In this document: positions 1-24,306 of the stretch, piece by piece | How positions within the stretch are numbered: position 1 is the stretch's first letter | Layout of the letters: each line of letters starts with the position of its first letter | Origin: Lytechinus pictus | Lineage: Eukaryota | Reading direction: 5' to 3' | Assembly (NCBI RefSeq): GCF_037042905.1 | Contig: NC_087249.1 | Location: 42,098,001-42,162,000, forward strand | Length of the DNA: 64,000 nucleotides | The notes under the pieces: model-generated | Told to the model about the DNA's origin: nothing | Seen by the model: only the letters and a program-made list of their open reading frames with translations | Database searches by the model: none | Translations under genes and position numbers: made by a program

Positions 1-1408
1 ATATACAGTGTATAAAGTACAACGCCATGTTATAACGTGTTACAAGCAGCGAGACTCGATAATTGAGCCGTGATCAAAAATTGAGCGCGAAATCTCGTGG
101 GTCATTAAGGTGTAAACCACCAGGGGACCCCGAACATAAAGTGAAAATATGAACGCCAAATGCGACTTTTTAAAGTTCACCCTTGGAGTACCTTGTCCCC
201 ATTTCCATTCAAAGTCGGATTTCATTTAAAAATCTTCATTTACCAATTTTACGAGTTGAAATTCTTCGGCGCGTCAAAATTGTATTACCACGTAACGAAA
301 CTATTATATCACTTGTCCGAGAACTATATATATGTTTGATGTTCAATAGACTGCCTTAATTGACATCGGCGACATTTCAAAACGCTTAACTGGAAATAAG
401 ACGCCATTAATTTATGTCTTGTGGCATCACATGAAGATATTAAAGTATTCTCTCGAGTGGGGTACTCCGGATCGAAAGGGGGGTAATCATACTTTGATTA
501 ATATACTGGACGAATGCTTGTCTTTACCCCATAACCCCTCCAACATCCATTGCTCCGGCCTGCATTAATCCTTAGAAGTATTAATATAGCTAGTAGCTAC
601 ACTGCAAGAAGATACAATACTCATTGGTCTTAACATGTTAAAGAGCGCGATAATTGTGCGTACCAGCATCGACAAAGTATTACTATACAGACATAAGAGT
701 TTCATTTCATCTCACATCGTTCTTTCGAGAATTCGTGATATATGGCCTTAATAAAATAGATATCTGTGCGTTGAACATCCTTCGTATCTCTCACATAAAT
801 CATTTCGTTACAACATGGTCTATAAAAACTGTAAAATGAGAACATTTCGATTCCATATTTCACCCTCTTTCGGCGCGCAACGTTTTGAATATGAAAAATT
901 GATGAAAGTTCGTTTATACAATATAGATCACAAAAGAACGTGGTGGCGACCGTGCTGTGGATTTCAATCACTATGAGGGGATTAGCTTAATCTTAAAGGT
1001 CATACAAGGATTCTGGTTTTATACTGGCCTATGTCACAAACAGAAAACCTACACAGAGTTTGTCAATATGCACCGCAGTTGGTGCAGATTATAAAACAGG
1101 TCTAATTTACATATAAATAACACATAATGTTGATGTATGATCCGACTTACAATCAATGTTTAACACGTTTCTTGTGAATGTGAAACATGTATTGCTACTA
1201 GTGGTGAGTATATACCTTAAAATAGTTAAGGATGCTTTGAATAAATCAAATCTTCCAGTAAATTGAAACGTCGCGCGAACTTGATTGACTTAAACTGTAA
1301 TATGTGAATCATGAATTATTCTGTTTCTTTCTCAATCATTCATTCTAAGACTTCTTTGAGACATTCTTTATTCTATGAAAAAAAGTAAGGGGAAAAGAAG
1401 ATACTTAC
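1..1408 (-). other. Intron 1 of the FGF gene (partial)
   Basis: Begins at the GTAAGT donor at 1408. No further FGF exon is recognisable in 1-1408. Confidence 0.8.
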
Positions 1409-2117
1409 AATATACATCCATATTATCCCGCGTTCCATTAATCGTTCCGTCCTCGTGAACGGCAAGGCGAAAGTTGGTTCGGCAGAAAAGCTGCGTCGGT
1501 TGCTTGGAGTTGTAAATAAGGGGACTCCCTCGACTTGATGCTTTTCTCTTTACCCTCCGACTGGGCTCGGCGTCGGCCTGGCTGCCTGTCCGTAGGTGGT
1601 GCTGGAGCGACGAGTCTGAATTCATTGGGCTCCAGCTATGCAACCTCTCACCTTGCTCTGTTCTATTTGAACCAGATGATGATGAGGGTGGCGAAGAGTT
1701 TAATCTCGACAACACTGAAGCAGTTAATTTTGATAACGTCGTCGACGACGATGTAATGTTTGATAATTTTATTTGATTAATAATATTATTGCTAACACTG
1801 TTGGATGATTTGTGCCCCTCCTTTGCGGCGGAGTCCGTGCTGATGCTGGCACTGTTTTTTGAAGCTAAGATATTTTTGAGCAACGCGCTGTTGTCAGCGT
1901 CTCTGATTGTTGCGGATATTGTGTGAATTTGTTGGTGCTGATTGTGGTGTTGTTGCCTCGTGTCGGCGTGTTCTCTTCTCGTTCGCATCCCGCCATCGTC
2001 CGATAACCCCGCTGCCAGGGATACGCATAAGAACCCGATGATGATGACATGCGAGGCTCTCTTACTCGCCGGTATCGTCGACGACCACCAATAATTTTCA
2101 TCCATCTTCGGTTTCAT
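1409..2117 (-). CDS. FGF9/16/20: Fibroblast growth factor (FGF9/16/20 / FGF-A type), first coding exon; the gene continues off the left edge of the window
   Basis: The ORF ends in the start of an FGF beta-trefoil core (QLFCRTNFRLAVHEDGTINGTRDNMDVY, matching the LYCR..G..L.I..DG.V.GT family pattern). A GTAAGT donor follows (plus strand acttac 1403-1408) at the conserved phase-1 FGF intron-1 position. The N-terminus has a hydrophobic signal segment (VIIIGFLCVSLAAG), a long Ser/Asn/Gln-rich region and RRVKRK. The first ATG is at 2117; a second in-frame ATG at 2105 has better context (AAGATGG). Subfamily call rests on recalled similarity and synteny. Confidence 0.9.
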
Positions 2118-2539
2118 GGAAACCGCGTCGCACACAGACGATGTCCAACGCGAAATCCAATCTCTTCAAAAAGATATCAAAATACAAATTATGATTACAG
2201 AAGAACTACGAAGCATGAAACGCATCTGTTCACAATCCAAAATTCTGAAGAAAAAAATAATTAATTCCAATGAATATTTAGCCGATCGCGTTCAAATCCA
2301 TTTGCACGTCGAAACTCCATGCGATTAAGTTTAAGTAATCCAATTTGTATTAAAAAAATAAAAGTGGCAAAGAAGAGTTGACGAAAAGTAAAATGTGAAT
2401 GAATTATTGGAGACGAGCGAAGTAAGAATCCCAAGAGAGGCCTTAGATGTCGGTTGTTATCCGGGAGACGAAATGTAGGAAGGAGAGGGGATAAGTACCA
2501 ACCAGGCGGAACGGACTGTTAGTCGAGTATGACAAGGTC

Positions 2540-2800
2540 TCAAATCTCGCACGAGCTCACATCACTGTCATTTACAGCTTCCAATCGAGGCTAGGATCTA
2601 CATGAACACACTGCGCACGCGCCTAATGACGTTGACTGAATCGAGTGGGCGTGGACAAATCCGCTTCGTTTGTCACAGAGAAGAGAAAAAAAGGAGGGAA
2701 GAAGGTAAACTTTTTTTCTCTCTCCTTCGCCAACAGATCGGAAGACGGGACTTCCTCGGCAAAATCCGCAAACACGAATGCGTTATTTCTTGAACACTCA
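2540..2800 (-). promoter_or_regulatory. Putative FGF proximal promoter, CpG-rich
   Basis: CpG-rich stretch upstream of the ATG with CCAATC (2581), TGCGCACGCGC (NRF1/P3A2-like, ~2612), TGACGT (~2627), a GC/KLF box GGGCGTGG (~2647) and TGACAG on the minus strand (~2565). The TSS cannot be located from sequence alone. Confidence 0.45.
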
Positions 2801-3105
2801 TTCAGTTCACCGTCTCGAATGGTGACGAATAAGTTGAGATGAGTTTATGGATGAGACGGTTATAATGTTTTAGTCAGGCATTATTATCTTTGGTGGTGTG
2901 GCTACTGGGTGCCCAAGCCCATCTTCATGATCGTTGGTTTAGCGGCTTGGTGACTCGTCTCCATGTAGTCTACAGCCCGATGGGTAGTGTCCGTGTTCAT
3001 GTAACTCGTCACCTGTTAAAGCAACAGGAAGGGTCACACCTAAACAGACAAAACAAAAGAAAATGCGATTTAAGAAATGGAGAAGAGATAGGGTGGTGAC
3101 GAGAA

Positions 3106-3243
3106 NNNNNNNNNNNNNNNNNNNNNNNNNNNNNNNNNNNNNNNNNNNNNNNNNNNNNNNNNNNNNNNNNNNNNNNNNNNNNNNNNNNNNNNNNNNNNNN
3201 NNNNNNNNNNNNNNNNNNNNNNNNNNNNNNNNNNNNNNNNNNN
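3106..3243. other. Assembly gap (N run)
   Basis: Run of n, flanked by purine-rich low-complexity sequence. Confidence 0.99.
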
Positions 3244-5091
3244 GAAAGAAACGAAGAAACAAAGAAAGGAAAGGAAGAAAGAAGGTGGGAAGAAATAAAG
3301 AGAGATGGGGAGAGAGATCGAAACTTCTAGAGGGAAAGGGGGGGGGGCAAAACCCCATAAAGGATAAGAATGAGAAAGAGAGGAACAGGTTCCAGGGAAC
3401 ATATAGGCATAATAGACAGAGTTTGATAGATGGAGGGGGGGGGGGGAGAGAGAGACAGAGGAGACGATGATAAATATACACAAATTGGTGAGTTAAGGTT
3501 TTGCATTAGTGAGTTCAGTGGTTGTATCATTAGCCAAATTAAGCCCTAAAATGTCTGTTTCCTGCGACACAATATAGAACATTCAACCCATGGGTTATCA
3601 GACAAATGAATATACACCGTCAGTGTCTATTCTAAATTGACTATTGTAATCGACACACACGCGCTGTTTTACTTTGCTATTGTTTGTTCTTAAAGGCCGG
3701 ACGTTAAATAATTTTCTTAATCCACTGGTGTGATTTACTTTATTTACAATGCATGCACGCCCATGTTACTAGCACCAATTCATTAATGTAATCAGGTGAT
3801 ATACACAACGGGTGATTTCAAGTTCAGTGTTGACCTTTTGGTGTTTGTGTTAGGTCAATTTTTACACGATTATAACACCAAACATAAAAAGACGATGGTC
3901 CCGAAAAGTCACTCACTAGTTGTTGAGATGTCAATAATGTGACCTGGATCAGTTTTACAAAGTCTGATTAGGTTTTGGAGCAAGGGGAGGCAATCCAAAT
4001 TTCAACACCAACACCGGACTTGAAATCATCCAACGTGTGGTTTGTCTCTAATGTAGAAATGCAACTCCGAGATACTCAAGTAAATATATTTCCTAAAATA
4101 AAAAAAAGCGTTTTTATAATGTGGATGAAAAATCTGCAAAAACTATGTAGTAATACCTACTTCGGGCTCGAATGATTTGTGAGTGAGATTCATTTCCCCT
4201 TCATGGATTAAAATGGTGCTTAGAATACTCCTCTTTGAAGTCAGTTTATCCAAACTTTCTTAATCTTTCATAATCTCAACCAATTAATGTCAATTTGAAT
4301 TCGTTTAGGGATATTAAATAAAATGACATAATATTGTGAATTAGAGGGGAGTAATCGTTTACAAAAAAAGTATATACACCTTTATAAATCATTTTGTTCT
4401 AGGATATTCAAAATAGATTGAGTTAGATTGAGTTACCGTTTACATAAATCCTCTACCCGTGCGACCTATCATTTTTTTTCAGTTTTCAATCATTTACTTT
4501 TCCATTATTTCCCCCCATTTTTTACTTTTCAATGGTCGTTGTGAATTCTCGTTTTCACTTTAATTTGTTATTAACCTTTAAACTTTTTTCGGTATTTATT
4601 TTAAAGGCAACTCAAATTGGGACGGAAGGTTGATAAAAATTGATTGATAGACATATACGACACACAGCAAATGCATACATTTTTTTTTACCTCACAATGT
4701 TATTTGGTTAAAAAGCATACTATAATTCAGCCCCCCCCCCCATTAAATTATACATTTTATAGAAGCAAGAAAGAATTATTTTTCGAAAAGTGATCCGCTT
4801 TATACTGCTAAGTCTGATGTATCAGTGTCATCTATGAAAAAGCTATAAGACGATTGATTTATAAAAAGGTTCTGTACATATGCCTAGCTTCAGTTAGACA
4901 TGACAATGATGTATTCAATTTCTCTAAAAACACAAATATTTTCTTATTCTATTCACTATTAAACGAATGAATGCTCAAATGACTACGGAAATTAAAGTGA
5001 ATGAATAAATTCAATAAGCTACTAAAGAATTGAAGTCATAAATGAATAGATAGAATAATAAATAAATGATTATGTGAATAGCTAATTGTGT

Positions 5092-5365
5092 GAGTGTGTT
5101 GGCTCAGTTGGTAGAGGGTCCGTCTCACAACCGGGAGGTCGGGAATTCGGATTCAAACAACGGCCATGACGGCCGCGTCAGACCAAAAGACGTTAAAACT
5201 GGGATGGGTAGTTGCTGCTACCCTGTTTGGCGTTCAACGATTAAGGGATAGAGCCTCGTCGATCTGGCGCTGCACAGCGACTGCCAGCCCCCGATCAATT
5301 GGGCAAAGTAAATTTTCGGAGTATTTCATTTCATGTCTATTTCGAACAATGAAATATTGATATTC
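5092..5365 (+). mobile_element. tRNA-derived SINE with a central domain resembling the Meta (MetaSINE) domain
   Basis: Pol III A box TGGCTCAGTTGG (5100-5111), tRNA-like anticodon arm and degenerate B box (GATTCAAAC). Then GTCAGACCAAAAGACGTTAAAA...GTAGTTGCTGCTACCCTGTTTGGCGTTCAACGATTAAGGGATAG, recalled as Meta-domain-like, and an AT-rich tail. Confidence 0.75.
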
Positions 5366-5858
5366 GGATTTTCTTTCAGAGTTAACATTTCAACAAATAA
5401 ACCAAAAAATCAATCAATTAATGAATAAATAGATAAAGTAAAATATAGGTAAAGAAATGCTTAAGTGGATAAACAATAGATTATTAAACGGATGAATTAT
5501 ATGCATGTATATCCAAATTGAAATATATATTTCTACACAATGTTTTATTGTCTTTGAATGAAATTTTGATTTTTTTTTTCATGCTGTTATTTTATTTCAA
5601 TAGATTATGTAATTATTTCAGAATAAATTGACTTGTTCCTTTTTAAATTATTAGTGTTTTTCATGCTTTTTTTCTTAGTTTCACATTGATGAATAGAGCT
5701 GTCTGTAGGAATAAACATTTGGCATAGCCACTGATTTTCAATGGGACGGGGTTAAGTTGAATAAGCGAAGCGATTGACCAACAAAGAGTCTGACAGGGGA
5801 CGCAACATCCTACGGAATATATATATATATATATATTACATTAGTGTTGTGAGAGCTG

Positions 5859-6038
5859 CACTCTAAAAACAAATCAGTCCAAAATGACTAGTTAATAGGG
5901 TCAGCTGGGTGCAACTGTTATTATTTTACTAGAATTGAGTTATTTCTGACTAGAATATAATCAGAAATGTGATTAGACTATCACTTGCACCCGGCTGACT
6001 ACTTGTCTAGTCAATTTGACTGATTTGTTTTAAGAGTG
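5859..6038. mobile_element. CACT...AGTG MITE (CACTA/EnSpm-like, non-autonomous)
   Basis: Long imperfect inverted arms CACTCTAAAAACAAATCAGTC / GACTGATTTGTTTTAAGAGTG, with internal TCAGCTGGGTGCAA / TTGCACCCGGCTGA. 2-bp direct flank TG on both sides. Confidence 0.75.
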
Positions 6039-8849
6039 TGGAGTTTTACACAATGAAATGTAAGGTTATGATAATTGATATACTCTATTATAATGCGAAG
6101 GAGCGTAGCGATCGAGAAGAGACAATTTGCTTGTTAATTCAGGGATATATTTTTTTAAAGAAATGAATACATTGTTTTTCAAAAGTTTGTAAACTGCATG
6201 TACGACAATCGTGTAGACTGAAAACAACCTTTTTTGGCTTATTGCATCAGAAATGTGCAGAAAATAATGTTAAGTGATTTTCCAGTGGAAAACTGATGTC
6301 ATAATTCCTCTAAATCGGAGACGCTGAGTGTATGTATACTCTAAGCTTATAGAGAGACAGCATGGGAAAGTGAAGGGCGGACGAGACAGAATATGAAATT
6401 GGTCGATTTTTTTCTCTCTCTTTTTTTTCTTCTTTTATGGAAGACACGGCGCTGTCGGCTCTCCTCGTCCTCGCCGACAATGATTAAGATGACTACAGAG
6501 CTGGAGGAGAATTGTTTATCCATATTCAAAATATATATTCCCCACTGTTTGTTTTATTTAGCTGCCTCCTGGTGCGACACGGGCAGTGTTTAATGTTAGA
6601 TTACTGGGGCCCCCGGGTTTTAGGGCTGTCGTGCACTTTGAGACCTGAGACCAAGTACATCCAATGCCATGTCTCAAGAACTCCTTGCAGATGATGTATG
6701 AGACCCCCCCCCCTGCCTGTTCACTCTCACCATCCCTCCTCTTCTCCTTATGGGGGGGGGGGGGGCTGTTGACCCTAGAGGTACATTATAAGAATCATGC
6801 TATAGGTAGCACCCCTCGTGCCCCCCTTTATAGAAACGAGGATAGATATACTTCTAGGCCCCCTTTTGCAACGAAGACCCCCCCCCCCAACCCCTTCTCT
6901 CCCTTCCTCTCTATATCTCTCATTCTCTTTATCATGTTTATCTAATATTTTAGTCTGAAATATGTCCTTTTTTTGCAGCGAAAACCCTCTGTTTGGGGCT
7001 TTCAAAATACAAACAACATCACTGCATGGTCTATAATGTTAGTATCCCCCCCCCCTAATTATGAAGTCCTGCATCAACCCCGGACCTCATTTACCCTCGT
7101 TTAGCACGATAATGAACTGGCATAGGGCCTGACATTTTACTATTATGAGTAAATGATTTTTGTTTCTTTTTTTTTATCTCACCACATTTTCTATCTGAAA
7201 ACCGAAAGCTTTTTGATAATAGAGCTAATTACTTTTCGAATATTTAATGTAGGAAAATGTAAAAAAATGCAAATTGTCATATCTGAGCACGTGATTACCC
7301 GTAAAAGTACTAGTTTTTTATTTTATTATGGTTGGATGAAAATGGTACCATAATTTATTTATAACATCGGGTTCGCTAAAATGAATATGGATAAAATTTT
7401 GGGAGGAATTATACATATGAATGAATGTCTTTAAATCTGTGAGCAACAACACTAATCTAATCATTGTTTCACATGTTATAACAATAACAGTCTAATACAT
7501 CTCTTAATCTGAGATCGTTTTTTTACTGTGTTACGTAGAACTTCATCCAACGGTTTTCATTTTCCGATATAGCGGTAAAATTTATCTGTCTATTGACCTA
7601 TTTTCATGGAAAATGCTTATGAATTATGATAGCCATCAGACTGGTTTGTAATGTGTTATGTGTGAACAAATATCTTAAAAAACAAATACAAGCTGGTTGG
7701 ATCAATAAATTCATGTAATAAGCCAACGCCAAACATAAAACCACATACCTTAAACAGGAGTGAATGGTTATCATAATGTCAATAATATATGTAATGCACT
7801 GGGTAACAATTATCTTGATAAGAAATGTTTACATGGGTGGATGTGTTGACTAAAAATCAGTTGCAAGGGTACAATACAACCAGGAAGTTTGAATTTTTAA
7901 AAATAATTTCACAAAATAATATACCTCATACAGAGCTGAATTAAAAAAAAATTATGAGTCTTTTGTATTAGCGTAGTAGTTTGTATTGATCAATACGCAT
8001 ATAAGTAGATCATGAACATTGTAAAGTAGAAAACCGTTTTGCATTTCCCATTAGAATTGATAAGTCGACATTGATAAGGGAATATTATCACATAAGATAC
8101 AAAAAAGTGTAGATTGATATGATATATTTTTCATGATTGCTTACCGGTAATTAAATAATAGTGATGGGAATTATTCATAATATCTTGCAATTTTAAACAT
8201 ACCAATCAATGATAAATAATTAACAAAAGTAATTAGTATAAGAGAAAATTATTATCATTCAAAGCTATGAATAACGTTTGAAATATGAGGTCAGTTGGGT
8301 GTATGGTTTAATATGACTTAAATGAAAATGGTTGTCATTGATATAACTCTAAGAAATTTACAAGAGTAAATGTCGTCCAAAGCTTCACTGTTTAACCAAT
8401 TTGTATATCCGTTTCCATAATGTTCTAAAATAATTTTCAGCTTACGCGTGTAACCAAGGGTTATTGATTAATATTCCTATGTGAATTGATAAATTCAATT
8501 TGTTCGTTAATCGAAATGAAGAAAATGCATTCGTAGAAGATGAATTTTTTGACATGTGATTATCCTTTATTTATCGCCAGGGCTTTTGAAGCACAAATTT
8601 AATTATGGAAAAAAAAAATCATTTTGCACAAAATATCATGCAGTCAGGTATAGTATCAGTACCACTAATGCGGGATAATTGAAGAAATAAACGAATGAGA
8701 AAAAATGTACGATCATGAAAGTTCATCTGTGTTGGTAAAAGATAACGATTTTGTTGAACTTTGGTTCACAACACAAAAAACAAAAAATGTAACTATGAAT
8801 AAATTTCGAAGATATTGTAAAAAAAATATATATAAATTTTGAGAAAGAA

Positions 8850-8958
8850 CGCGGTGGTATATTGCGGGTGGTTTTAGCAGACGACGTGCTGCCTTGTTTA
8901 CATTCAACAGCTGATTGATACGCATGCGCACTGAACTGCAGTAGGCAAAATGGCGACC
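8850..8958 (+). promoter_or_regulatory. CpG-rich housekeeping-type promoter/5' UTR of the MICU-like gene
   Basis: NRF1 (sea urchin P3A2)-type element CGCATGCGCA at 8921-8930, YY1-type AAAATGGCG overlapping the start codon, and a forkhead-like TGTTTAC at ~8895. NRF1 plus YY1 is typical of nuclear-encoded mitochondrial genes. Confidence 0.6.
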
Positions 8959-9183
8959 TCCTCGAGATTGTTTACAAGGCAAGCTCAGCGAATGATTTGT
9001 CGCATCCAGCGACAGTACAGCAACAAATCGAGTACCTATGCATCGACGTCGAGAACTGTAGGCCCAGTTGCTGCAAGTATCTGTGGTATTGGTTTTGTGG
9101 CAGCCACTGGTTACTGGTTGTACAATGAAAAGAAATCGCTTCTCCTGCCACCGACTGTGCATGCACGGGAGATCCCGCGGAAG
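8950..9183 (+). CDS. MICU2/3: Mitochondrial calcium uptake protein MICU2/MICU3-like (EFHA1/2), exon 1: presequence plus hydrophobic segment
   Basis: ATG in strong context (AAAATGG), 78 codons, then AAG|GTAAGT phase-0 donor at 9184. Arg/Ser/Thr-rich acid-free presequence, hydrophobic GPVAASICGIGFVAATGYWLY, then PTVHA, resembling the recalled human MICU2 N-terminus (GPLAAAVAGAALAGAG...FTVSAQK). Head-to-head with an FGF9/16/20 gene as in vertebrates. The EF-hand exons are not in the window, so the name is inferred. Confidence 0.7.
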
Positions 9184-9424
9184 GTAAGTACGGTACTAAG
9201 TGGGCGGGGGACGGGGGGTGCGAGATCTTGCTCTACCGCTCAGATTGTGCGGGCTTTTACTTTAGTGTTCAGTTAGGTCTACTTTAATGTCAATATCCTA
9301 TTAGTATTACGATCGAAATGAAACAACATTTGTAATATATGTTCTTTCTTTATGCATGGTCATCGCTTATGCTATGCTAATGGCTATATTTTTTCTTATC
9401 TAGATCTATCTAGATCTTATCTAG

Positions 9425-9486
9425 ATTCCCATTCTGGGAAAAGCGCTCTATAAAAATTGGCTATTATTATTATTATTATTATTATC
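9425..9486 (+). mobile_element. 3' tail of a LINE/SINE (L2/CR1-type tail) ending in (ATT)n
   Basis: GGGAAAAGCGCTCTATAAAAATTGGCTATTATTATT... A similar GTGCT-ANAAAT-TATTATT tail occurs at ~10755-10815 and ends the SINEs at 39602 and 50870. Confidence 0.45.
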
Positions 9487-10342
9487 TAACTTACATGTAC
9501 CGGTACCGGTACCTGTACTTCAAGTTCAACCAGTTGAAATTGAAATTATTCAACTTATTCAATGACGACAGATCATGTCAATTTCTAGACCAAAAGCTTC
9601 AGTCTCTGTATTTTGGTTGTTCCGCTGAACTGCGTTGGCTCACTCACCAATACATAGACTGAAGGGCATGGAGGCCCGTACGTACAGACAACGTATTTTA
9701 GCAGTTACGTTAGATCTAACAGCGGAAACCCGATTTTCCGATCGTTTTTATGTACATAAAATGTCACATTATGAAAAAAAAATCACATCCATATTTACGA
9801 GAAAATGTTTAAAATTCAGAAATATCGTACCTTAGACCGCAGTTACCGCTAATTCCTTTCAAACGATAATCGAAACATCGTCATCTTCGATCCTTTCGTT
9901 GGTCAACGTAAGTTGCCATCTTGGATGACGTCATCATCCTTACAGACGTATTTACCAGTCGCTATATATCGCAATTTGTGCCGCTGCTTTGCGCTTGTAC
10001 ATGTAGATGTGCGTGCGTTCAGAACTTGTCGCTCGCATTGATTGGCCAAGATATCGACAATTTAATCGGAAAGCCTTGATAAAAGCACAATTCGTTGACG
10101 GCTGCCATATTTTCCTCTCCAGCAGAAAATTAAAAAATAAGGAATAACCCGGGGAATAACTCATCGGTAACGTATATTTTCGATATTTTATAGATTTTAC
10201 ATCGTATCAATAGAAAGATTAGAGTCTAAAGAAAATAGTGGGCCTTCGTTCAAGATAATATAATGTCATTTAGAATCTAAAAGAAATGAAAAATCTGGAC
10301 AAAACCCACCCTCCGAATTGTCGAGCCAGATTACACATGCAG

Positions 10343-11665
10343 GCTCGCACTAACACACTACCGTCGGTAAATGGGGATTATAGTAAAATGTCAGAAATTG
10401 TTGAATAAATCCCCAGAAACGACGGTTATTCCTGTCTAGTCAATTTCATGATTAATTGGTCTAGATCTTTAAACATGAAGCGAAGTTATTCATGTTAATT
10501 GTAACTTGGAGCAAACTGAAGTCGATGATTCTGTCGTCCCAATGCTGAATGAAGGTTAAATATGCTTACTGTGTAGTGAGTGTGTGAGGTTCGATTTATG
10601 TGTACTGTAGATATCAATGTGAGCATGACAAGCCATTCATGCAGCAATGGCAGGGTTATCTCCATCCTTGACTCTCTTAAAATCAAAATTTAAAAAATAT
10701 CTCTTTAGTTAAGAAAATATGCTGTGCAGACAGAAGTAAAAAGAGCTCTGAACAAGCGCAGCTGAATATATCCATATAAAAGCTGTGCTTTACAAATTAA
10801 TGTTTATTATTATATTTAGACCAAACGTTTCAGTCTCTCTGCATTTACATGTAGTTGTTTTGGTGAACTTCGTTGTGTGGGCTACACTAACCTGTAGTAC
10901 ATTGACTGAAGTCTCGTACATGTAGGCCCATGCCAGACAGACAATGCATTATAACTCAACTCACACATGTATTTAGAGATCATGAATTTAAGCGAAATTT
11001 TTGTTTGGACGCTTTGAAAATTACTCCATTATGAGAAGAAAAGATTATACAATTAGGAAGTTCATACCTTCAAAAAGTTGTAATTGTAAATTGCCATCTT
11101 ATCAGTGGCAATACATGTATATTGCGATTAGTGTCACTTCCTTTTGTTCATACACGTTCTGCACTTGTCACTCGCATAGATTAGCCAGGATATCAAAAAG
11201 CCTAATCAAACGGCCTTGATAAAAGCCTAATTAAAACAAACAAACTTGGCGTAAATACATGTATTCATATCTGAATGGTACGCGCCTTAAAACCCAAGAA
11301 AACAACGATAACAACTAGGCTGCCAGTTTTTAATCCCCAGCAATAATTTTTGAAAACCAAGAAACAAACATGGTTAACTTTTTTTCTGTAATTTAACATA
11401 TGATGATTAATATTACATGTGCAATAAATGTTCGAATCTAAGGAAAAAAGTGAGCCATCAAGTAAAATTATGCTTGATCTAGTAAAATGCTTAAATTCTA
11501 GACAAACGTACATTATTGTAAGTTAGTATTGGGCAACGTGTGTATTTGCGTAGCGCTCACAGTAACGTACTACTGTCTGCATCTACATGTAGGAATGATA
11601 GTAAAATGTCAGAAATCGTTAAATACTAGTAGATCCCCAGAAAAGACAGTTATTCTTGTGTAGGT
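10343..11665 (+). repeat. Diverged ~100-bp direct repeat pair (10343-10440 and 11553-11665)
   Basis: ATAGTAAAATGTCAGAAAT(T/C)GTT...ATCCCCAGAAA(C/A)GAC(G/A)GTTATTC appears twice about 1.2 kb apart. Confidence 0.8.
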
Positions 11666-12466
11666 ACATGTAATAGACAGGAAGCTGGGGCTTATCCCAA
11701 TCGCAGTTAGTAACTGTTTTAGCCTACATTATTGCATGCATCATTTCAACTCACCTCTCAAAACTGGTGATTTGCATTGAAATTTTTAGGTCTATTTCAT
11801 TATGATTTTTTCATAGAACACATGTAACAACGAAAGATTTCTTGGAATTTCCTGCTTTAAAACTGATCTGAATTTTTACTTTAAAAAGTATGAAAATAAA
11901 CAGTTTACTGGGGGCTTTTGGCTCCTTGCTGCAAATTATGCCCTTCACGACCTACAAGTATCAATAAATGGTAGCTGATATATGATCAGAGTTATCAACA
12001 GTTGTGTCGCACATAACATTATGGAACTCTGTCTAAATGTATGTTGCACTTGCCTTGCATTGCCAGCAGGAAGTGCATGAAATAGGCTCTGGTTGATCAA
12101 GTCTATTTAAATGACTACGTAAATGAATTTATTTTTGGTATTGGGGAAAAAAGATAAAATGTCAATTACTAACTAAATACTCTGACTTCGGAACCCTGCT
12201 TTCTGAAACTTTACTAAAAGCAAATGTTTCTAAAAGTAGTTCAGATCACTATAAAATTTACTAAAAAAATACAGTCTATATCCGACTAGTGGCAAAAATC
12301 AACCGTTAATTGTTTGTACATTGTATGATTGAATTTTTACAGACGTGTATCAATCAGATATGATTTTTGTTTAGATCTTGGACTGATCTTGAAACATTGC
12401 CATCTTAAAGATGGAAATAGCTTTGATAACAGGTGCACACTACAATGTGCAATTACTGTATCTATA

Positions 12467-12860
12467 CAATGCGTCCCAGAAAAAAGGAAACCGGGATTCC
12501 CATGTTTTTTTTTCTTCAAAGGCAAATTAATGATGGTATTTAATTTACATAATCATATAATTCAATAATTCCTCTTTATTTTGATACCTAATATGTGACG
12601 AACACTACACGCATTAATGAGCAAAACGAGTTTGAATTTGTAATGTCAAAACCAGGTTGAGCAGAAAAATTGGACAAGTTTGGTTCGCGATACGTCGAAC
12701 GTGCATATTCGACGATTGACTCATTAGCATTTCTTTTGTATTCTTTGTTAGGATTCTCTCGCCTTGTCAAATAGCTACATGTATATCAACTTCAGAAGGC
12801 AAATCATGATAATACACAAATCACATAATTACACACTTATCAGTAACTACCACAGGAAAT
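12467..12860 (+). mobile_element. Truncated Tc1/mariner-like non-autonomous element (left end only)
   Basis: TA|CAATGCGTCCCAGAAAAAAGGAAACC is a TA-CAGTG-type terminus followed by CpG-retaining sequence. The matching right TIR was not found and the right boundary is approximate. Confidence 0.45.
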
Positions 12861-13172
12861 CTGAATTTCAGCAAAAAAAAATCATAGATGCCCCCCCCCA
12901 AAAAAAAAAATGGTGTAAATGTAAGGATTATTTCCAAAGCATCCACAGACATGGACTTCCATATCCTTAGATTAATTGAAAACCTGAGAATCGTTGGATA
13001 AACCAAATTTTAGTACTAGTCCAGAGTTTATAGAGAATGACATTCTGCTTTAGAAGTTTCCTTGTATTTGATAAATATTTGCTCAAAGTACATGTATGTG
13101 TCATTAAAAAACTTCCTCCTGCCAGTGTTACTACAAAGTAGGTAAACCCTAAACTCTACATTATGTAGTAGT

Positions 13173-13353
13173 CAGGGGCCACGGAATGGGTTTTGAAAGT
13201 GAGAAGGCTGAGCCAAAAGTGGGAGGGGGGGTGACCATGCAAAAAATCACAATCAGATGGCAATTTTTATGTTTTAGTTAACGGTTGTGGGAAAAGGGGG
13301 GTGGGGGTGGGCTGAAGCCCCCAGCCCCCCCCCCCCCCGTTTTACGGTCCCTG
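13173..13353. mobile_element. hAT-like MITE
   Basis: Termini CAGGGGCC...GGTCCCTG with a degenerate 8-bp TSD, GTAGTAGT / GTAATCGT (6 of 8 match). Confidence 0.6.
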
Positions 13354-13591
13354 GTAATCGTAGTAGTAGTATTACATTGTAGTATAAGTGGTAGTAGTAG
13401 TACTTAGTTGTTGTTGTAATAGGAGCAGTAGTACTCTTATTGATATTGCATTGTTGTTTTAAAATTAATATTGACAAACTATAGACAGATTCTACAGATC
13501 TTCTACATGTACATGTATTTCTTTATTTCCTTCTTTATTGAAGAAAAAATATTTTCCAAGCATTCTTGGCTTTATTGTATTACAAAATGTA

Positions 13592-14456
13592 GGGGAAGGC
13601 GGGGTAAGTTGAGCATAGGGGCAAGTTGAGCCACCACCCCCAGGCCAATAATGAATGAGTCAGACATTATGGTAGTGTCATGTATTGATGACCCATTACA
13701 TAACCCTTAACCCCACCACATTGTTTTCAACTTTGAAACAAAAAGTACTTTTTTAGAGGGAAAAATACACATTTCAGCCAAAAAAGTAAAAAAGGGTGTG
13801 AAATAGAAAAGTGTTTTTACACACACACGTCTTTACATATGATAAAGACATAAGAACAACATTGTCAGTCCAGGTATGGATCTTCATTCTTGTCACAGTC
13901 TTTTACATGATGGATGTGCATAAGAAATGTGTGGATGCGAAATTATCCCATTAAGTTCGGACTGGGGTAAGTTGAGCCAGCCAACATGGGGAAAGTTGAG
14001 CCATGGTAATTCTTATGGTAATGTAAATAAAAACAAACAAACCTTAAAAAGTCATCAATATGCAGGCAGAAAAGAGCAAATTCACATGACAGTTCTTTTA
14101 CTTTTAGAGAATGTTAGTATTTATAGAGAATTAGCATGTGAAAAGACTTTAAATAAAAAATTGACATGCTGGTTCTTCCCGCATACATTTTGTACATAGT
14201 TTTTGTGGCTCAACTTACCCTACATGTAGAAGATGGCACAACTTACCCCTAAGATGGGGCAAATTGTGCCACTTGACATCGTTTTTTTCAAAGGTCACAA
14301 CGACTTTCAGTGTGGGGGTAGAAAGTTGTATATAGGTGAAAAAGTTTTCACAAGAATCATATTTAAAGGCAAGGTACTTATTTCTACAATATTATTAGTC
14401 ATATCAATTCTATCATGCAAAATGCAAAAAGTTTCACAACTTACCCCGCCTTCCCC
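13592..14456. mobile_element. Non-autonomous TIR DNA transposon, GGGG termini, TA target duplication (Tc1/mariner/pogo-like)
   Basis: Perfect TIR GGGGAAGGCGGGGTAAGTTG / CAACTTACCCCGCCTTCCCC flanked by TA on each side. The internal motif GGGG(T/C/A)AAGTTGAGC is reiterated near 13601, 13619, 13964 and 13988 and inverted near 14207 and 14238. Confidence 0.9.
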
Positions 14457-16232
14457 TACATATATTGTAAAATTGCTTTGAAGAAAATATCAGTTAGAGA
14501 AACATGAATAAAGTATCAGCATGATAAACATGAATGAAGTATGGATTGTATATCAGTAAGATATTTAAAGAAATTCCCAGATTTTTAAAATGAACTTTAT
14601 AATAAGTCATTTCTTTTGTAATTGAAATGCAATATAAAGTTTGAGAAAAAAAAAATGAATTAAAGCTGATATGAAATGAATGTAATGCATGAATAAATTT
14701 AATAAATTAATAAGTTCCAAGTTTCTATATTAAATGAATTAATCAATTACTGAATGAATAAACAATTGTGAAATATACATGTATATCAGCAAAATAAAAA
14801 ATGATATTGCATTATATAGTAATTTGTCAACAAAATGCAATAATTAGTATTTAACAAATAGTATGTGTTCACAAATTAAATATACATGTAGTACTAATGA
14901 TAATATAGTGCTATGTGTATGTTGCAATGCACATACAAGTAATGCAATTTCTCTCAATTTTAGAGATTGGTTTTGTTGAATAAACATGCCCTTTGATCTC
15001 TTCAAACTGCTTTGTATTTTGAAATTTATGATTATTTTTTCTGTTCTTTCCTTGTCGTTTCAAATACATCACTTGACATTTTACCTTCTGCCTGCTCAGA
15101 GCTCAGATACTCTACATGCTTCAAGAATAGGAAATACCTCTCTCAAAATATGACCAGAAACTATTAGAAACATTTTTGTTGGAAATATATCTTTACTCTT
15201 GATTAAACTCACCAGACTTGAAAGTAAAAAAAGGATGTGCTCTGTAAACAGAGACTCCAAATACTATACACTGTAGCTCCACCAGTAGTATCCAACTTGA
15301 AAAGGAAAAGCCTCAGATTTTTTTTTTTTGAGCTGGATTTGAAATTTTCCACTGTGTGCTTGCCGACCACTTGCCAGACATTATATTAAAATTCATTCTC
15401 TGTGTACTCATCATATACTTGTATGTATTTTCAATTACTAATATTGCAATGCAATATGAGAAAATTACCCATTTGGATTCACGGCAAAGACAAGCTTGGT
15501 CTTGTTCTGGATCGAAAGGCGCCCTTTGAGCCCTTCCGACTTTGATGATTTTGTGTTCCCCCCTCGTTTTCTCTCTCTCCTTCATTCCTACCCATTCACA
15601 AGGCCTATGTAACTCTCCTCCCCGGCAAACCGTCGCCGTCCCCAGTCACAGGGTATATTGTTTACATATTTGACTTTATTGGTCTCAAGCGACACACTAT
15701 TCTGTATTCATACCTCAGTATTGTCCTCAAACGTGTTCAACAGTAATTGTTCCAATTGTCTGCTTTAGTTGTACTGGGAATGCCCTATTCTTGATTTTGC
15801 AATTGTATACATTAAGCATTCACTTGTGTTTTTCAGGTCTTTATTCCATGTACACTTTCATTCATGTTGGTGTAAAGGTATTCCCCAGTCAGGGTTCCCC
15901 TCTTAGCTTACGTTTCTCTGTTTTATGATGACAAACTTTGTTGCTATGACAGTTTTTTGTGGTAGGTGCTAAATGTACACCGGTGAAGTCACCTGTGTCT
16001 GAACTGTACTTGAACATGTGCTGCCCTCCATGCATGTAACCTGCCTTGAGATTACCAATTTCAGACAAATATACTGTATTTAAAAGCTGACATTTCTCTG
16101 TGTTAACTTTATGTCGTATACCTAATTAAGCAAGTCCAACTCTGATTAAAAAATGTCTGCTTTTTGCCTTTCCCATATACATTTTACCTGACCATGAAAA
16201 CAAGACTAAATTCATGAGTATGCATGTTTTAA

Positions 16233-16470
16233 CCCTTTGCACGCTGATTTTGCAATTTTGCACATTTGTACAATTAAATCCAACAATCTAAATAATTAGT
16301 TTTCTCCCCTAACTTCACATTAGAGAAGCTAATAAATGGCAAAAGTTCTTGGACAACATCTATAATAATCATTAGTATCAATTGTTCAAATGAAAATCTT
16401 GAATCAAAGAAAATAACATGGAAACAATTGTCATTATTTTCCCCCAAAGTTGATTTCAGTGTGCAAAGAG
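16233..16470. mobile_element. piggyBac-like MITE
   Basis: TTAA|CCCTTTGCACGCTGA ... TCAGTGTGCAAAGAG|TTAA: TTAA TSD and CCC-type terminus. Confidence 0.75.
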
Positions 16471-17644
16471 TTAACTAGTGAATATGCAAAATGAGTGAAA
16501 AATAGATAACTGTTGTACATGTTGAGGATATACAATGCAATGCAGACTCATGTAACAAATCATTTATGTAATTACATGTGGGATTAAAGGCATTTTGAAT
16601 TTTGTTGTTAAAAAGCTTTATTTTTAGAATTAGTTGTGACGGATGTCTGCATACTTGTGCAAGGACTCTCATTGAAATGGTAGCATATCTTTCAATTATT
16701 GACTTAAGATAAATATTCAAATAAAATATGGGAAGTTCTTGGCATGTATGTGCAGTGCATCCAGCATATTTGTAGGAACATATTGTTGATTATTAAATTT
16801 ATCAAATTCCTCTTTATGATTTAGGCTACAAGTTTAATCCAAAGTACAAATATATTGACTTAAATTTGTTGTATTTGCATAGTATTCCAGACAAAGTAAA
16901 TCAGCCTCATGAAAAGAGCACATTTTCATTAGCCAGCCTCTTAGTTGAAAGATCAAATAGAATGCAACTCTCCAGTAAGAGTTTCTGTGAAAGCATTTTG
17001 AGAATTCATATAAAAGTCTAATTGCAGAGGATTTGCTTTATCTAATTCTCCAATTTACCCACTTAAAGTACAAATAATGTTCCGCTTTTATCGCTACATT
17101 TATCCTTCATCTTCTTCATTGAACGATGAACTCCGTGACCTTTTCATCTTTTGCGATTGAAGTCTGGTCTAGCTAACTATGAGAAAATTGGATTGGAGGA
17201 AAAAGTACATATGTCGAAGTATAATAATGGTAGAGATTGTTTAAAGAGGAGGGAGAGTACACAGCAATAAAATGTGTTTAAGATTAGAGTGAATTACCTA
17301 AAATAGGGAACCCCCTGCCATCTTGGCCACACCATACAGTGAGAGTTCAACCTAAAATAGTTTACTTTTTGTTTTAATTGTGCCTTCTCTGTTAAAATCT
17401 GAAAACACAAGGAGGAATTGAGTCAAGGAGATGGAGTGAGTTAGATGCGTTCCCATTAGCCCCTAAACATGCTCAACTTTGAGGTAGCGGGAGTGATTTT
17501 CATCTGTACCCATTTCAAAATTAAAAAGTATGTAGTTTTCAAGACTCCAACTTTTACCATGCAGTCCTTTTAGGATCTAGAAAAAAAACAGCACCAGGGC
17601 ATTTCAGGGCAAAGGCTTAATAAATTTTGCCCCTTCTAACATTA

Positions 17645-17774
17645 GGGGAGCAATTAATGAAACAAACAGTGGTTTTTCAATATTTGTTACAAGCAACTGA
17701 AATCTTTGCATCTGATTGGCTCAGAGCAAGATTATGAGTGAAGAATTACTATTCGTGTTATGAAATGCTTCCCC
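17645..17774. mobile_element. Degenerate ~130-bp MITE (GGGGAGC...ATGAAA family; second copy at 54165-54303)
   Basis: GGGGAGCAATTAATGAAAC ... GTTATGAAATGCTTCCCC. The core TGAAATC(T/C)TT...CTGATTGGC is shared with 54165-54303. Confidence 0.55.
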
Positions 17775-18559
17775 GGTCTTTCATAGCCATCTCTGCAGTG
17801 GTTTAGAACACCATCTTTATTTCATTATTTTGTTGTGTACCTTTTCCCCTATTTATGCCCTAGGTATTGAGCATGTTTTTCAAGACACATGTATATCCAT
17901 TGCCTGCCATAGAAAACCTTCAGGTGCTTTGTCAAAAGTGTATTCTCTTTCAATGTTTGCAAAGATGTCCCTCTTTGCTTGAGATAAAAGTCTGAAGCAA
18001 CACTCCTTTGCATCTGTATTGTAAGTTAAAAACTTAGCTTATAAAGGTACATGTATCTTGTGCATAATCTTATGCTTAAAAAGAAAATCATCTCGGGGTC
18101 AGCGTAACCAACTGTTTTGTCAATGTGTGGGACAATGAGAACGGGCCTGGAGAGCTTGTAGCACATACAGGAGCTGGCATTGAAGTCCTTTGGTCTTCCC
18201 ACTGTTTTCCAAGATCCCCGCTTCCCATAAGCCTAGAAGCACGATGTAATGGTCCCTCTGATGCAAAACTAGTCGGGACCCCTGCCGGTACAATTTGTAT
18301 CCCAATCTTGTGCCTGTCCCCAACCCTTCATGTATCTAGGGAATAGTTAGTTCTCACTTCACTGATATACATAAACCATGTTTAAAAGTACCTTGAATAC
18401 TTTTATCATGTTTAAAAATTCCCTGTGTATTTCTAAATCACATTTAGTGCTAAAAATCATGACCTGATTGGTTTTAGATAATCTTAAAATTATTAATTTC
18501 AAAGTTTGATATTATTTACAGGTAAAAAGTACTTCACATCTTAAAATATGCAAGATACA

Positions 18560-19440
18560 ATGTGATACAATGTACAGTCTGAAATATGATGATGAAATTG
18601 ACAATTAAGATATCTAAAGTGAAACCCCCAAAAGTAGTAATTTTCTTATTTTCTCTTTTTGCTGTATCAAACCAGGGATTGGTCTTATGCAAGATATATA
18701 CTTCCTATGTAAGTGTATTTGATTATGATATTTTTATCATATCAAGTCCTTTTACGCCTTTTGGACCCCATGCGCGCGCCAATGCTCAGCGGCGCTTGCA
18801 CAGTCGCACAAGCGCAGCCCGGCTAGCGCTAGGGCTATATGCTAGGGCACGGCGGCCGTGGCCCCTGCCTGCTGCACTGCATGCACTGCGCTGTCTATGG
18901 TGATATGCATTTTAGGTACAGTATGCGCCCGGCCCGAATATGACAACTTTTGCCATTGGCCTGTGGTCTGACACATGTTTATTTAAAGCTAAAACGCGAA
19001 CGCGAAGTTTGACCAATGAACATCATTCTTACATGTACATCATCGTAAAGCTTAGAGAAAACTGCACAATGACTCATGGAAACTAAGCTGTAAGATACTA
19101 TCAAGCGAAATTGGATCGAGTGGGAAATCGTTTGTGGTGACATAAAGTAGGATTTTACGTTGAGTTTCATCCTATTTTTGATATGAAAGGGGTGTTTTTT
19201 ACCCCAAAACGCGAATGTAATTAACATCTTTGCAAAAATTTCAATTATTTAATGGAAATAATATGGGATATCATCAGCATTATATCATTGAAACTAAGGA
19301 TAAAAGTGGGAACTTTTTTCAGGAATGACAAAATTGTTAACAAAACATGAAATTTCCAATGGTATTTCCATCTAGAGTGGTAGACACTCGCGGAAAGCAC
19401 GCGCAGTTAGTGTCCCATAGGATTCGATATGGGGCACAGA
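18560..19440. mobile_element. Probable non-autonomous DNA transposon remnant with a GC/CpG-rich core
   Basis: Abrupt CpG-rich block (18770-18940, 18990-19130, 19385-19440) inside a CpG-poor intron. Termini were not resolved, so boundaries are approximate. Confidence 0.3.
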
Positions 19441-22400
19441 ATAATGACAACAGCTATTTACTCAGAATTTTTTTTTGTTTTTGTTTTAAACTGTAGTCTA
19501 CATTCTAAATACGTAATAGTGGTAATGATAATAATAATTTCTTATTGTGTGCCTTTTTGAAAGCTACAAAGTGCTATACAAAATGACAAGAACAAATACA
19601 ACAATTGCTAAAAAGTGACTGAAAATAAAACCACACTGCTTGAAGCACTACAAACAAATGACACTTGGGCATACATGTACATCTCTGCCTCTGCCTCAGT
19701 CATTAGATTCAGGACTGCAAAGCTTCATTCAAGTTCATCATTCCTACTTTCCTCTCCCCCCCCCCCCAGGAGATTTGAAAGAATGGTCACCTTCTAAACT
19801 TTAGAAACAATGCTGGGTAAAACCGCAAAAAAACCTGCAAAGGACTCCTCTCCTGGCAGGGGTGACCAAAAAACCTTGTTGGAAATCTTGGTTGTTCCAG
19901 AAAGATGAAGAGATATTTCATTCTTCATTAGTTTGGTAATTATATAATTATTATAATGACTAATTTCTCTTGTTTAAATACAAATCTGATTATAGGGAGA
20001 ATTTTTGATTAAAACTACATTGTATGTATAAAGGGGAGGGGGTTGGCATAAATGAAATTTGGATACTGGATTAACTACTCCTCCCCTCTTTGTGATCCAA
20101 TATTGTAAAAAAAAAAGTTAAACATTGATATCTTAACTGTCTTTCATAATTTTTGTCTGACATTAAATTCTTATTTTTCAAACCTAATTGGTAAGTTGAA
20201 AATGGAAAGAGGTGTATAATGTGTACATAGACCCATGGATACACATAAATGTAGGCCCTATAGTGTACGCACATGTCCATGAACGTATCATTTTCTGTAG
20301 AAATTGGTTTTGGAAATCCATCTTTGAAGTGAAGGTTTAGTGCTTGAACTTTTAACTTTCTGGAGCAGCCATGCAGTGTTTATTGTCCAAGTTCACTACA
20401 AAGACTATTTAAACAAAGTCCAGTTTAGAATGGTTCCTTTCTGGGATGATAGAACAATTGATGTAATATGCAAGTGTTCCTTTGTCAAGTAGTTTATTAC
20501 TTATTGTATACAAGGAATAAATTGTACTGGATGACAAGAACTTGTGCACAACAATGTCATTATTGACCCTTTTGTGTGTTGGCGTGTGAGTCATTGAAAT
20601 ATTAGATTGGTCTATATTTATCAGTGAAATAAATTGAAAGAATTTAGGTGATGATTTCACAATACTTGCCTATTATTGATGCAGTATTTACCCCTGTTTC
20701 TCTCTCAGAGAGGTGTTATTCCCTCAAAATTATTTTTTGGGGGGTTTTCAACTCTATATAATAAGAGCACAGTATTACAATAACAAGAACTTGCATGTAT
20801 ATGATTAAAAAAAAATTAAAAAAAATGTCCTGCTTTTCTTTTTGAATAAAATTTGATTGAAAAAGGATAAGGTGATGAATGATAATAATTATGTCATAGA
20901 GTGCCATATCAACTATGTAGAGTGCTCAATTCAGATAAAGTTAATAGAAAGAGTTTTGGAACATTTTTTAGGGACTTTACATTGAGTTTCAATTGTTTCA
21001 TGTCTTGTAGAAGTCTATTACACAGTGTGGGGCAAGCATGTGCAAAGGATCTTTCCCTCCAAATATGACAACAACCAGAAATTTATAATTCTTAATCAAA
21101 ACAAAGAAACTATTCTCATATTTTTTTTTAAAATAAAAAATGACTGGTGGGCAAACACCAGAACTTGACATCTTTGATTAGTTATTGGCTGCTCAGAAAG
21201 GTCTTGATGAGTGAGTTACCATGTTGAATAAGTTACCCATCATCGGGTAATACAAGACTTTAAGTAAGGACTCTAAACCACTCTTGGGATAATCTCAGAA
21301 TTAAAAACCTCTTTCTTTGATCCCCAAGCTTTCTCTACATCATCCCTACCACCATCTGAATCATCTAGTAGATCATCTCAAACTTTTTTCTTTCCTGATC
21401 AATAAGGACCCAAATTAAATCATTAGAAGATAATGCTGGCTAAATGAAGTCATCCAGTTGGTGAATTCAGCACACTTAATGATCATTGATTTACCCTTGA
21501 ATAGGATACATGGACCCACCATCCATGACGAAAATATTTATTTCACAAGTAGTTCATTACATTGATTTTTTTGACATCGTAAGCTGCTTGCAAGCTTGAG
21601 CTGTATGCATGGACATGGAAGGGGATAAAATTATTCGCTCTTATGGTAAATAATGGACATGATTACCTTAATCAGTTAAGATAATTGAAAAGAAGTCAAG
21701 TTCTCCTGCAGCAAAAGCTGTGAAGTCAGCCTGCCTTTGTTGTATACCCTGCGGCTTTTCCTTTGCTACTCTTAAGGACATGGGTCTTAACAGCTTAATT
21801 AACAGTCTTCAACCCCTGTAGGAGAAACATAATGGATTGATTGCCCTCCTGCGGTTTAATACTTACGAGCTTATAATCCATCCACAATGAAGTCCTGATT
21901 GACTCCAATGCATGAAATACCTCTACTTTGATCTGGTATTATCAAGATAATTAAATGCAACAAGGGACCTACATCATATACCTGAAGCAAAAAAATATAA
22001 TAAGAGGAAGAAAAACAATCCTTCTCAAACCTAGCTGTAAAAATATTTTCTGATATTCATCAATATTTCAAGACCGCGAGTATACCCCACATGTACATGT
22101 TAACCCAGGAAAGAAAAATATATGAAACATACAGTATAAATTTGATTGGTGATATTCCATTTGGTATTATTTTGGGAAATGATGCATACCTGCTATCAAA
22201 GTACATTTGTAAGTGCAAATGCTCTGGAATGTCAACAGGCGTGAAAAATAACTTGGGTATATTAAAATATTATAAGTGGAATTTGTACCAAAATTCTGTC
22301 ATAATTTCATCATACTCTATATAAAGACACATGTTTCAAAGTTTCTCCTCAAGGTGTAATATACTTTCTGATATTACAACATACTCTATGAACGTTGAAT

Positions 22401-23945: not shown

Positions 23946-24306
23946 AGGTGGTTCCCAACCATCTCAGTCTCATGAATCCCCATTGAATTTTTGCATTCAC
24001 ACTTCCCCGAAACATACCTTTCGCAGAAAGTTTTCAAAATTACGAGCATGTGCTGTTATGGTCTGATAGGCAAGCAAGGCGTGTGATTCAACTACACGCT
24101 GGGCTAAGAAAGTTCCTGTAATTTGCTTTCACACTGCCCAAATACCTGCAACCTAGGATGTATACCTGCGAAAGTTCTCGTAATTTTGTAGGTACATGTA
24201 CCTACTATTTAGCGGGTATTTTCTTTCGGGGAGATTACGCGTAGTTTGCTTTAACACTGCCAAAATACCTGGAACTGACGACCTTCAAGGAGGTTTGAAA
24301 CCACCT
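23946..24306 (+). mobile_element. MITE family A, copy 1 (PIF/Harbinger-like)
   Basis: Termini AGGTGGTTCCCAACC / GGTTTGAAACCACCT with reiterated TTCACACT motifs. Aligns along its length with 24899-25390. Confidence 0.8.

Follow-up and report, generated by a model that had tools for sequence, protein, structure and literature searches.

Conserved pairs of neighbouring genes were surveyed across the Metazoa by Irimia et al. (2012, Genome Res; PMC3514665), who found that most of them are arranged 5′ to 5′. Their Fig. 4E presents fgf20a and efha2 (now MICU3) as a conserved microsyntenic pair of the trans-dev/bystander type, with H3K27me3 on zebrafish fgf20a and without this mark on efha2. In vertebrates, EFHA-ZDHHC-FGF9/20 blocks have been described (PMC3636272), and the divergent linkages of human FGF9 with MICU2 and of human FGF20 with MICU3 are the vertebrate form of the pair (PMC3636272, PMC3514665). 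Here we describe the corresponding locus in a stretch of 64,000 nucleotides from the sea urchin Lytechinus pictus (NC_087249.1, positions 42,098,001 to 42,162,000 of the forward strand; hereafter the window, with positions counted from its first letter), in which the 5′ end of a fibroblast growth factor (FGF) gene, fgfA, on the minus strand diverges from the 5′ end of a MICU3-like gene on the plus strand. This arrangement represents, in a sea urchin, an ancient microsyntenic pair of the Bilateria that joins FGF9/16/20 to MICU2/3 (formerly EFHA1/2). We give a probability of roughly 0.8 to the reading that the two divergent 5′ ends form such an ancient pair and that cis-regulatory constraint has kept it together.

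The principle of this pairing has been in print since 2012, and the sea urchin locus adds one more example: the same two families are immediate divergent neighbours, and a developmental signalling gene stands beside a long, intron-rich and unrelated gene. A literature search combining the pair with synteny terms returned no echinoderm description. The echinoid instance differs from the published one in that present gene models conceal it, since 119 kb separate MICU3 exon 1 from the next exon and the L. pictus RefSeq protein does not include exon 1. The elements that are new in this work are the missing MICU3-like exon, a microexon and a 109-bp conserved element between the two genes.

The minus-strand gene is fgfA

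The minus-strand gene is fgfA, also named fgf9/16/20, the single well-studied FGF ligand of sea urchins. Translation of the open frame at 1409-2135 ends in QLFCRTNFRLAVHEDGTINGTRDNMDVY, the start of the FGF core. The coding part of exon 1 begins at an ATG at 2117 and ends in phase 1 at a GTAAGT donor at 1408, and its product consists, from the N- to the C-terminus, of a hydrophobic signal-like segment, a long low-complexity spacer rich in Ser, Asn and His, and the first beta-strands of the FGF core. Residues 1-236 of the L. pictus RefSeq protein P0001, the spliced fgfA product of 342 aa with the Pfam FGF domain PF00167, match the frame at 1410-2117 with 100% identity. A six-frame Pfam search of the whole 812-Mb genome placed exon 2 at C5:42076554-42076670 (PF00167, 29.5 bits; cut-off 24), with exon 3 about 600 bp past it. 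Both exons lie outside the window, and the position of exon 2 thus gives intron 1 a length of about 22.7 kb.

Comparison of the layout with that of the family indicated three coding exons, with the core split at conserved FGF positions: exon 1 ends in NGTRDNMDVY, exon 2 runs from SSLYIQ to NLYGN, and exon 3 continues from RRVSRNCYF to the stop. The same three-exon layout was observed in the partner genes of amphioxus and of the hemichordate Ptychodera. The core matches 139 FGF chains in PDB. The proteins closest to exon 1 are the FGF of Strongylocentrotus purpuratus (87%), the cloned FGFA of Paracentrotus lividus (B0EVL8, 74%) and a protein of Diadema antillarum (45%). The P. lividus FGFA is reportedly that of Rottinger et al. 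2008. The L. pictus core is more than 90% identical to those of P. lividus FGFA and the S. purpuratus FGF, with which it has the three exons and the long N-terminal spacer in common; no notable difference from these genes was found, and the L. pictus gene is their orthologue. The fgf9/16/20 gene of Lytechinus variegatus is attributed to Adomako-Ankomah and Ettensohn (2013), as cited in a passage of PMC8180256. RefSeq names the L. pictus protein 'fibroblast growth factor 14-like', a label that the ranking of its similarity to human FGFs (see below) does not support.

Beyond the window, intron 1 of fgfA holds four colinear non-coding stretches with 70-83% identity between L. pictus and Diadema antillarum (Table 1).

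The plus-strand exon is the first exon of a MICU3-like gene

Transcription of the plus-strand exon was followed in two stranded total-RNA runs and in two sets of transcript contigs from the same species, over positions 6500-12400. RNA depth was 10-20x at 8938-9184, all in a single read orientation, which fits a plus-strand transcript, and two transcript contigs, one of them of 1854 nt, start at 8938 and reach the donor. The exon comprises a 5′ untranslated region of 12 nt and a coding sequence of 78 codons (8950-9183), has an in-frame stop at 8932, and is followed after 9183 by a GTAAGT donor in phase 0. In one of the runs, 31 reads extend past 9183 with one consensus (0.98 agreement), and the 30-mer taken at the junction has a single match in the 264 kb examined, at +128,448 from the window start and 119 kb downstream. 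In the first conserved MICU exon, which begins GCAGAAGACCTG and encodes AEDLSLYPISDKEYRF, this position is base 2; the joint is in phase 0 on both sides, and the frame reads from HAREIPRK directly into AEDLSLYP. Since the 31 junction reads and the 1854-nt contig lead to this unique MICU exon, 8950-9183 belongs to exon 1 of the MICU3-like gene, and the plus-strand exon is the true first exon of that gene.

The first 59 of the 78 residues of the peptide include 12 arginines and lysines and none that is acidic, and a hydrophobic helix comes after them. From this composition, exon 1 is predicted to encode a mitochondrial presequence and a transmembrane-like membrane-anchor helix. The peptide is colinear with the N-termini of the MICU3-like proteins of sea star, hemichordate and amphioxus, and shows 45% amino-acid identity with exon 1 of Diadema (E 9e-15).

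The body of the gene was located with MICU3-like query proteins that had been recovered by using a 38-aa downstream exon against representative proteins, the orthologues being named calcium uptake protein 3-like. By tblastn with these proteins, twelve MICU exons were mapped between +128.4 kb and +235.1 kb from the window start, intron 1 being about 119 kb long and the whole gene about 226 kb. A motif search over 200 kb downstream located, at a distance of 189 kb, an EF-hand exon of the kind typical of MICU genes, and the EF-hand loops DRDGNQRIDRKEF and DKDGDGKLSQKEF are present in the gene. Scans for EF-hand and MICU motifs and tblastn with MICU3 proteins found no other MICU exon in the window. 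Against the human proteins, the L. pictus RefSeq MICU3-like protein P0283 (XP_063955582, 393 aa) scored 334.5 bits with MICU3, 258 with MICU2 and 143 with MICU1, and one downstream exon was likewise closer to human MICU3 than to MICU2 or MICU1. The gene is colinear across the whole conserved region with human MICU3 and MICU2, which are EF-hand gatekeepers of the mitochondrial calcium uniporter (PDB 6agi, 6eaz), and has in common with them canonical first and last EF-hand loops; its predicted basic N-terminal presequence, followed by a hydrophobic segment, would be a further likeness. In contrast with the human genes, it is one invertebrate gene, older than the duplication that gave vertebrates MICU2 and MICU3; it includes alternative 5′ exons and a microexon of 15 nt, and its function in sea urchins is putative. 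The MICU3-like gene is the pro-orthologue of vertebrate MICU2 and MICU3.

The RefSeq model of the gene lacks the exon at 8938-9183, and its protein consequently lacks the predicted targeting sequence. P0283 instead begins with MTDSLDG at a small exon at +123.35 kb (L013:9354-9410, MTDSLDGVMKSEKSEEEVE). The possibility that this exon is an internal cassette was ruled out by an in-frame stop 13 codons upstream and by the lack of an acceptor, and the exon is either an alternative first exon or an artefact of the model. The MICU3 proteins retrieved from S. purpuratus and L. variegatus are shorter than P0283 and N-terminally truncated, and start well past the predicted targeting segment. In one transcript contig, from another sample, a 15-nt microexon (GATGCGAAAGATGAG, encoding DAKDE) is present between exons 1 and 2; it maps to L010:3378-3392 (C5:42185378-42185392, +87,378) with AG and GT flanks.

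An earlier note, made from the letters of the window, had read the two frames as the first exons of an FGF gene and of a MICU2/3 gene, the latter with a mitochondrial presequence, with start codons some 6.8 kb apart. The identity to P0001, the PF00167 match of exon 2 and the GTAAGT donor confirm the first exon; the strand-specific RNA and the basic, acid-free N-terminus agree with the second, and the distance is 6833 bp. The splicing from 9183 that the note had put forward as a check leads into the first conserved MICU exon of a gene that scores 334 bits with MICU3, and not into a non-MICU gene. The note had further expected tBLASTn to find MICU2/3 downstream: the gene is indeed on the same chromosome, but not close by, as it lies 119-226 kb further on with none of these exons in the window.

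Conservation of the gene pair across animals

The presence of the pair in other animals was surveyed with the longest annotated MICU3-like isoforms and the genes called within 10 kb upstream of them. An FGF gene was found upstream of MICU3 and on the opposite strand in the sea star Asterias amurensis (255 aa, at 2.8 kb), the sea cucumber Apostichopus japonicus (351 aa, at 5.3 kb), the hemichordate Ptychodera flava (256 aa, at 2.3 kb), the amphioxus Branchiostoma floridae (196 aa, at 1.65 kb) and the brachiopod Lingula anatina (440 aa, at 1.9 kb). In the sea urchin Diadema antillarum, the FGF gene (347 aa) is also on the opposite strand, with 8.3 kb between the ATGs, and MICU exon 1 and the MICU3 body are on the same contig, the body about 197 kb further on. 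The two genes are adjacent in at least four major lineages, as seen in Echinoidea (two orders), Asteroidea, Holothuroidea, Hemichordata, Cephalochordata and Brachiopoda; their orientation is divergent in every lineage where the pair was found, and their spacing is 1.6-8 kb. Long introns spread the MICU3 coding sequence, of about 1.4 kb, over 56-244 kb of DNA: the gene occupies 56 kb in amphioxus, 71 kb in Lingula, 97 kb in Ptychodera and, among the echinoderms, 117 kb in Apostichopus, 183 kb in Asterias, about 226 kb in L. pictus and about 244 kb in Diadema. The earlier note had placed the linkage before the split of echinoderms and chordates and had called for a survey of the pair. The linkage is ancient, as the note held, but its age was understated, since with the pair in Lingula it is at least as old as the bilaterian ancestor, with losses.

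A second FGF9-like gene was observed in Ptychodera flava at the tail side of MICU3 (L028:109566-116613), and two FGF genes flank MICU3 in this species.

To place the FGF partner within its family, scores against the human FGFs were compared. The single L. pictus sequence scored 77.8 bits with FGF20, 76.4 with FGF9, 72.6 with FGF2 (partial) and 62 with FGF1, and its exon 3 alone scored 22.7 bits with FGF9 and 18.8 with FGF1. The echinoid FGF profile scored 92.5 bits with FGF9, 91.7 with FGF20, 75.4 with FGF2, 68 with FGF7/10 and 61 with FGF13. Exon 3 of the amphioxus neighbour of MICU3 reached 72 bits with FGF20/FGF9 vs 49 for the next family and is clearly FGF9/20-like, and the Ptychodera neighbour scored best with FGF9 and has an FGF9-type C-terminal tail. 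A protein search with the L. pictus FGF core returned four echinoid proteins and one fragment, and the clusters of the protein atlas are generic FGF. In the literature, Czarkwiani et al. (2021; PMC8180256) placed an echinoderm fgf9/16/20 group with the chordate genes. The conserved position beside MICU3 gives support to fgfA as FGF9/16/20 that is independent of sequence trees. The similarity ranking and the synteny together support the assignment of fgfA as the FGF9/16/20 orthologue; the earlier note had argued for it from the synteny, and the amphioxus and echinoid scores are in line with that argument.

The intergenic region and its conserved element

The distance of 6833 bp between the fgfA and MICU3-like ATGs depends on the estimated length of an assembly gap at 3106-3243. 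Both coding frames are closed by in-frame stops before this gap, which thus bears only on distance and contiguity. Over the interval, a Diadema contig that has no gap agrees with L. pictus in order and orientation: FGF exon 1, a weak match of 41 bp, a conserved element of 109 bp, and MICU exon 1. This element (6513-6621 in L. pictus; L031:6242-6346 and L032:3233-3337 in Diadema) has 86% identity over 109 bp, is colinear with the flanking genes and, when L. pictus and Diadema are compared over the 12 kb that surround both starts, is better conserved than any other stretch, the FGF exon 1 having 71-77%. It is present in single copy in the L. pictus genome. The stranded RNA runs gave no depth over it, and it has no Rfam match.

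The second Diadema contig (L032, JBFRCO010000093.1) encodes the same FGF protein in a gene of 30 kb, vs 88 kb on the other contig, and carries the conserved element 3 kb further from the ATG than the other contig does. This contig probably represents either the second haplotype or a region duplicated in the assembly.

Table 1. Coordinates of the features of the fgfA/MICU3-like locus (window positions unless a contig label precedes them).
Feature	Position	Strand	Basis or remark
fgfA intron 1, window part	1..1408	-	GT donor 1408-1407; runs past window edge to exon 2
fgfA (fgf9/16/20) exon 1, coding part	1409..2117	-	translation; protein identity; in-frame stop at 2166-2168
Conserved stretches, fgfA intron 1	L003:3790-3926, L003:8308-8655, L002:376-485, L002:6393-6467		L. 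pictus vs Diadema comparison
Assembly gap (N)	3106..3243	.	intergenic; purine-rich low-complexity flanks
Conserved non-coding element, candidate cis-regulatory	6513..6621	.	Diadema comparison
MICU3-like exon 1	8938..9183	+	transcript contigs, stranded RNA, junction reads, Diadema match, colinearity with MICU3 N-termini
MICU3-like intron 1, window part	9184..64000	+	no MICU exon in motif scans or tblastn
G-rich and CT-rich tandem repeats, units of 77 and 83 bp	33615-33956, 35336-36023		within MICU3 intron 1
Second assembly gap	38501-38653		within MICU3 intron 1

Other features of the locus

Repeated sequences account for several further signals around the two genes. Just upstream of the MICU3 start, RNA depth was observed at 8711-8788, where several positions vary and loose ends occur at either edge; the signal is probably a repeat common to transcripts from elsewhere and separate from the MICU3-like gene. 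Within MICU3 intron 1, 9455-9651 and 10243-10439 are the two ends of a repeated element with very deep RNA on both strands, and many joints there skip about 730 bp (9641 to 10370). Poor agreement among the loose ends there points to reads that derive from many copies elsewhere. In the intergenic region, 5090-5290 holds a tRNA-like sequence (GGCTCAGTTGGTAGAG...) that resembles a tRNA-derived short interspersed element, and ARAGORN called no tRNA near 5100-5290. A search for RNA families across the window with Rfam found none. The only open reading frames of at least 130 aa in the window, at 35.3-36.4 kb, were considered as a gene and rejected, the sequence being a CT-rich tandem repeat.

In the MICU3-like gene, a tandem array at L024:3020-7345 contains 36.7 copies of a 118-bp unit that are 98% alike. 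The array starts within a MICU3 coding exon and repeats the last 35 nt of this exon with its GT donor, which results in about 36 decoy donors past the real one. A COMM-domain gene lies tail to tail directly after MICU3 in Diadema, Asterias and Lingula, and in L. pictus 215 bp at L025:8300-8514, about 7 kb past the MICU3 stop, are 79% identical to the corresponding part of the Diadema locus (L033:62404-66541). FGF, MICU3 and the COMM-domain gene may form a conserved block of three genes.

Why the pair persists

The reason for the persistence of the pair is most likely cis-regulatory constraint, which we infer from the features that count for it: the very long MICU3 gene in all lineages, the 109-bp intergenic element, the four elements in fgfA intron 1 and the differential H3K27me3 of the zebrafish fgf20a/efha2 pair (PMC3514665). 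Under the genomic regulatory block model, regulatory DNA of fgfA would be located in the intergenic region that it shares with MICU3 and probably also in the giant first intron of MICU3, the 'bystander', and a breakpoint between the two genes would harm fgfA expression. The critical DNA may be inside MICU3, as in a block, between the genes, as in shared control, or in both places. The locus resembles the described blocks Isl-Scaper and Otx-Ehbp1 (PMC3514665) in having a developmental gene beside a long-intron bystander and in its conservation across phyla. It differs from them in that all the elements found to be conserved across orders are located either between the two genes or within intron 1 of fgfA itself, the enhancers within the bystander being putative in L. 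pictus. The regulatory block that the earlier note had suggested for fgfA and MICU3 is kept as something we infer.

Several observations weigh against cis-regulatory constraint on an FGF9/16/20-MICU3 pair as set out here. In the comparison of L. pictus with Diadema, the 3′ half of MICU3 showed conserved exons only and no conserved non-coding DNA, so the prediction of enhancers inside the bystander is unsupported in that part of the gene, and the 109-bp element could equally serve shared or bidirectional control. The pair is not universal, as no gene was called within 10 kb upstream of MICU3 in the horseshoe crab Limulus polyphemus. The partners in Asterias, Apostichopus and Lingula are identified as FGF at the family level only, and the assignment of fgfA to FGF9/16/20 comes from score ranking and synteny rather than from phylogeny, a method that in the study of Oulion et al. 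(2012; PMC3420111) yielded no assignment for the sea urchin FGF.

In another account, what keeps the pair together is control that the two genes share, or that acts in both directions, from the short stretch between them, and not enhancers within MICU3. The head-to-head arrangement at 1.6-8 kb in every lineage found, the position of the one strongly conserved element between the two starts, the MICU3 3′ introns without any such element and the predominance of 5′-5′ pairs in the survey of Irimia et al. (PMC3514665) all speak for it. We nevertheless consider it rather unlikely, as the functions of fgfA and MICU3 are unrelated, the zebrafish genes differ in chromatin state as described above (PMC3514665), a spacing of 2-8 kb exceeds that of classical bidirectional promoters, and the consistently huge MICU3 introns suit a bystander better. 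An adjacency without function, whether a slowly decaying ancestral order or chance, is a very improbable explanation. It would accommodate the apparent loss of the pair in some lineages, Limulus being the example within 10 kb, and vertebrate FGF16 is not known to have a MICU partner, which also counts for it. However, the same unrelated genes are immediate neighbours in the same orientation in five echinoderm species of four classes, a hemichordate, a cephalochordate and a brachiopod as well as in vertebrates (PMC3636272, PMC3514665), and gene order elsewhere is largely scrambled across such times (PMC3514665). Invertebrate genomes, with some 20,000 genes, contain no more than a handful of FGF genes, so that the two would hardly ever come together by chance again and again. 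That the juxtaposition is an assembly misjoin at the gap at 3106-3243 would be suggested by a gap of estimated length, in low-complexity sequence, between the two exons; given an independent ungapped Diadema contig with the same order and orientation over the equivalent interval, and the same neighbours in five other species, we regard this as hardly credible. Altogether, cis-regulatory constraint on an ancient pair is the reading that we retain.

These results extend the published pair to four echinoderm classes and to a brachiopod, and correct the annotation of the L. pictus MICU3-like gene, whose real first exon, with its predicted targeting segment, is restored. They also provide positional support for the orthology of fgfA, a point that sequence trees had left open (PMC3420111), and the 109-bp element offers a specific test object for the regulatory-block explanation. 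We propose, tentatively and at less than even odds, that the 109-bp element, the elements of fgfA intron 1 and putative elements in MICU3 intron 1 make up one fgf9/16/20 landscape that has locked the pair together since the bilaterian ancestor. If this were true, the sea urchin, which has a single fgfA and is readily studied by reporter and CRISPR assays, would offer the simplest setting for a direct demonstration of why the pair is unbreakable.

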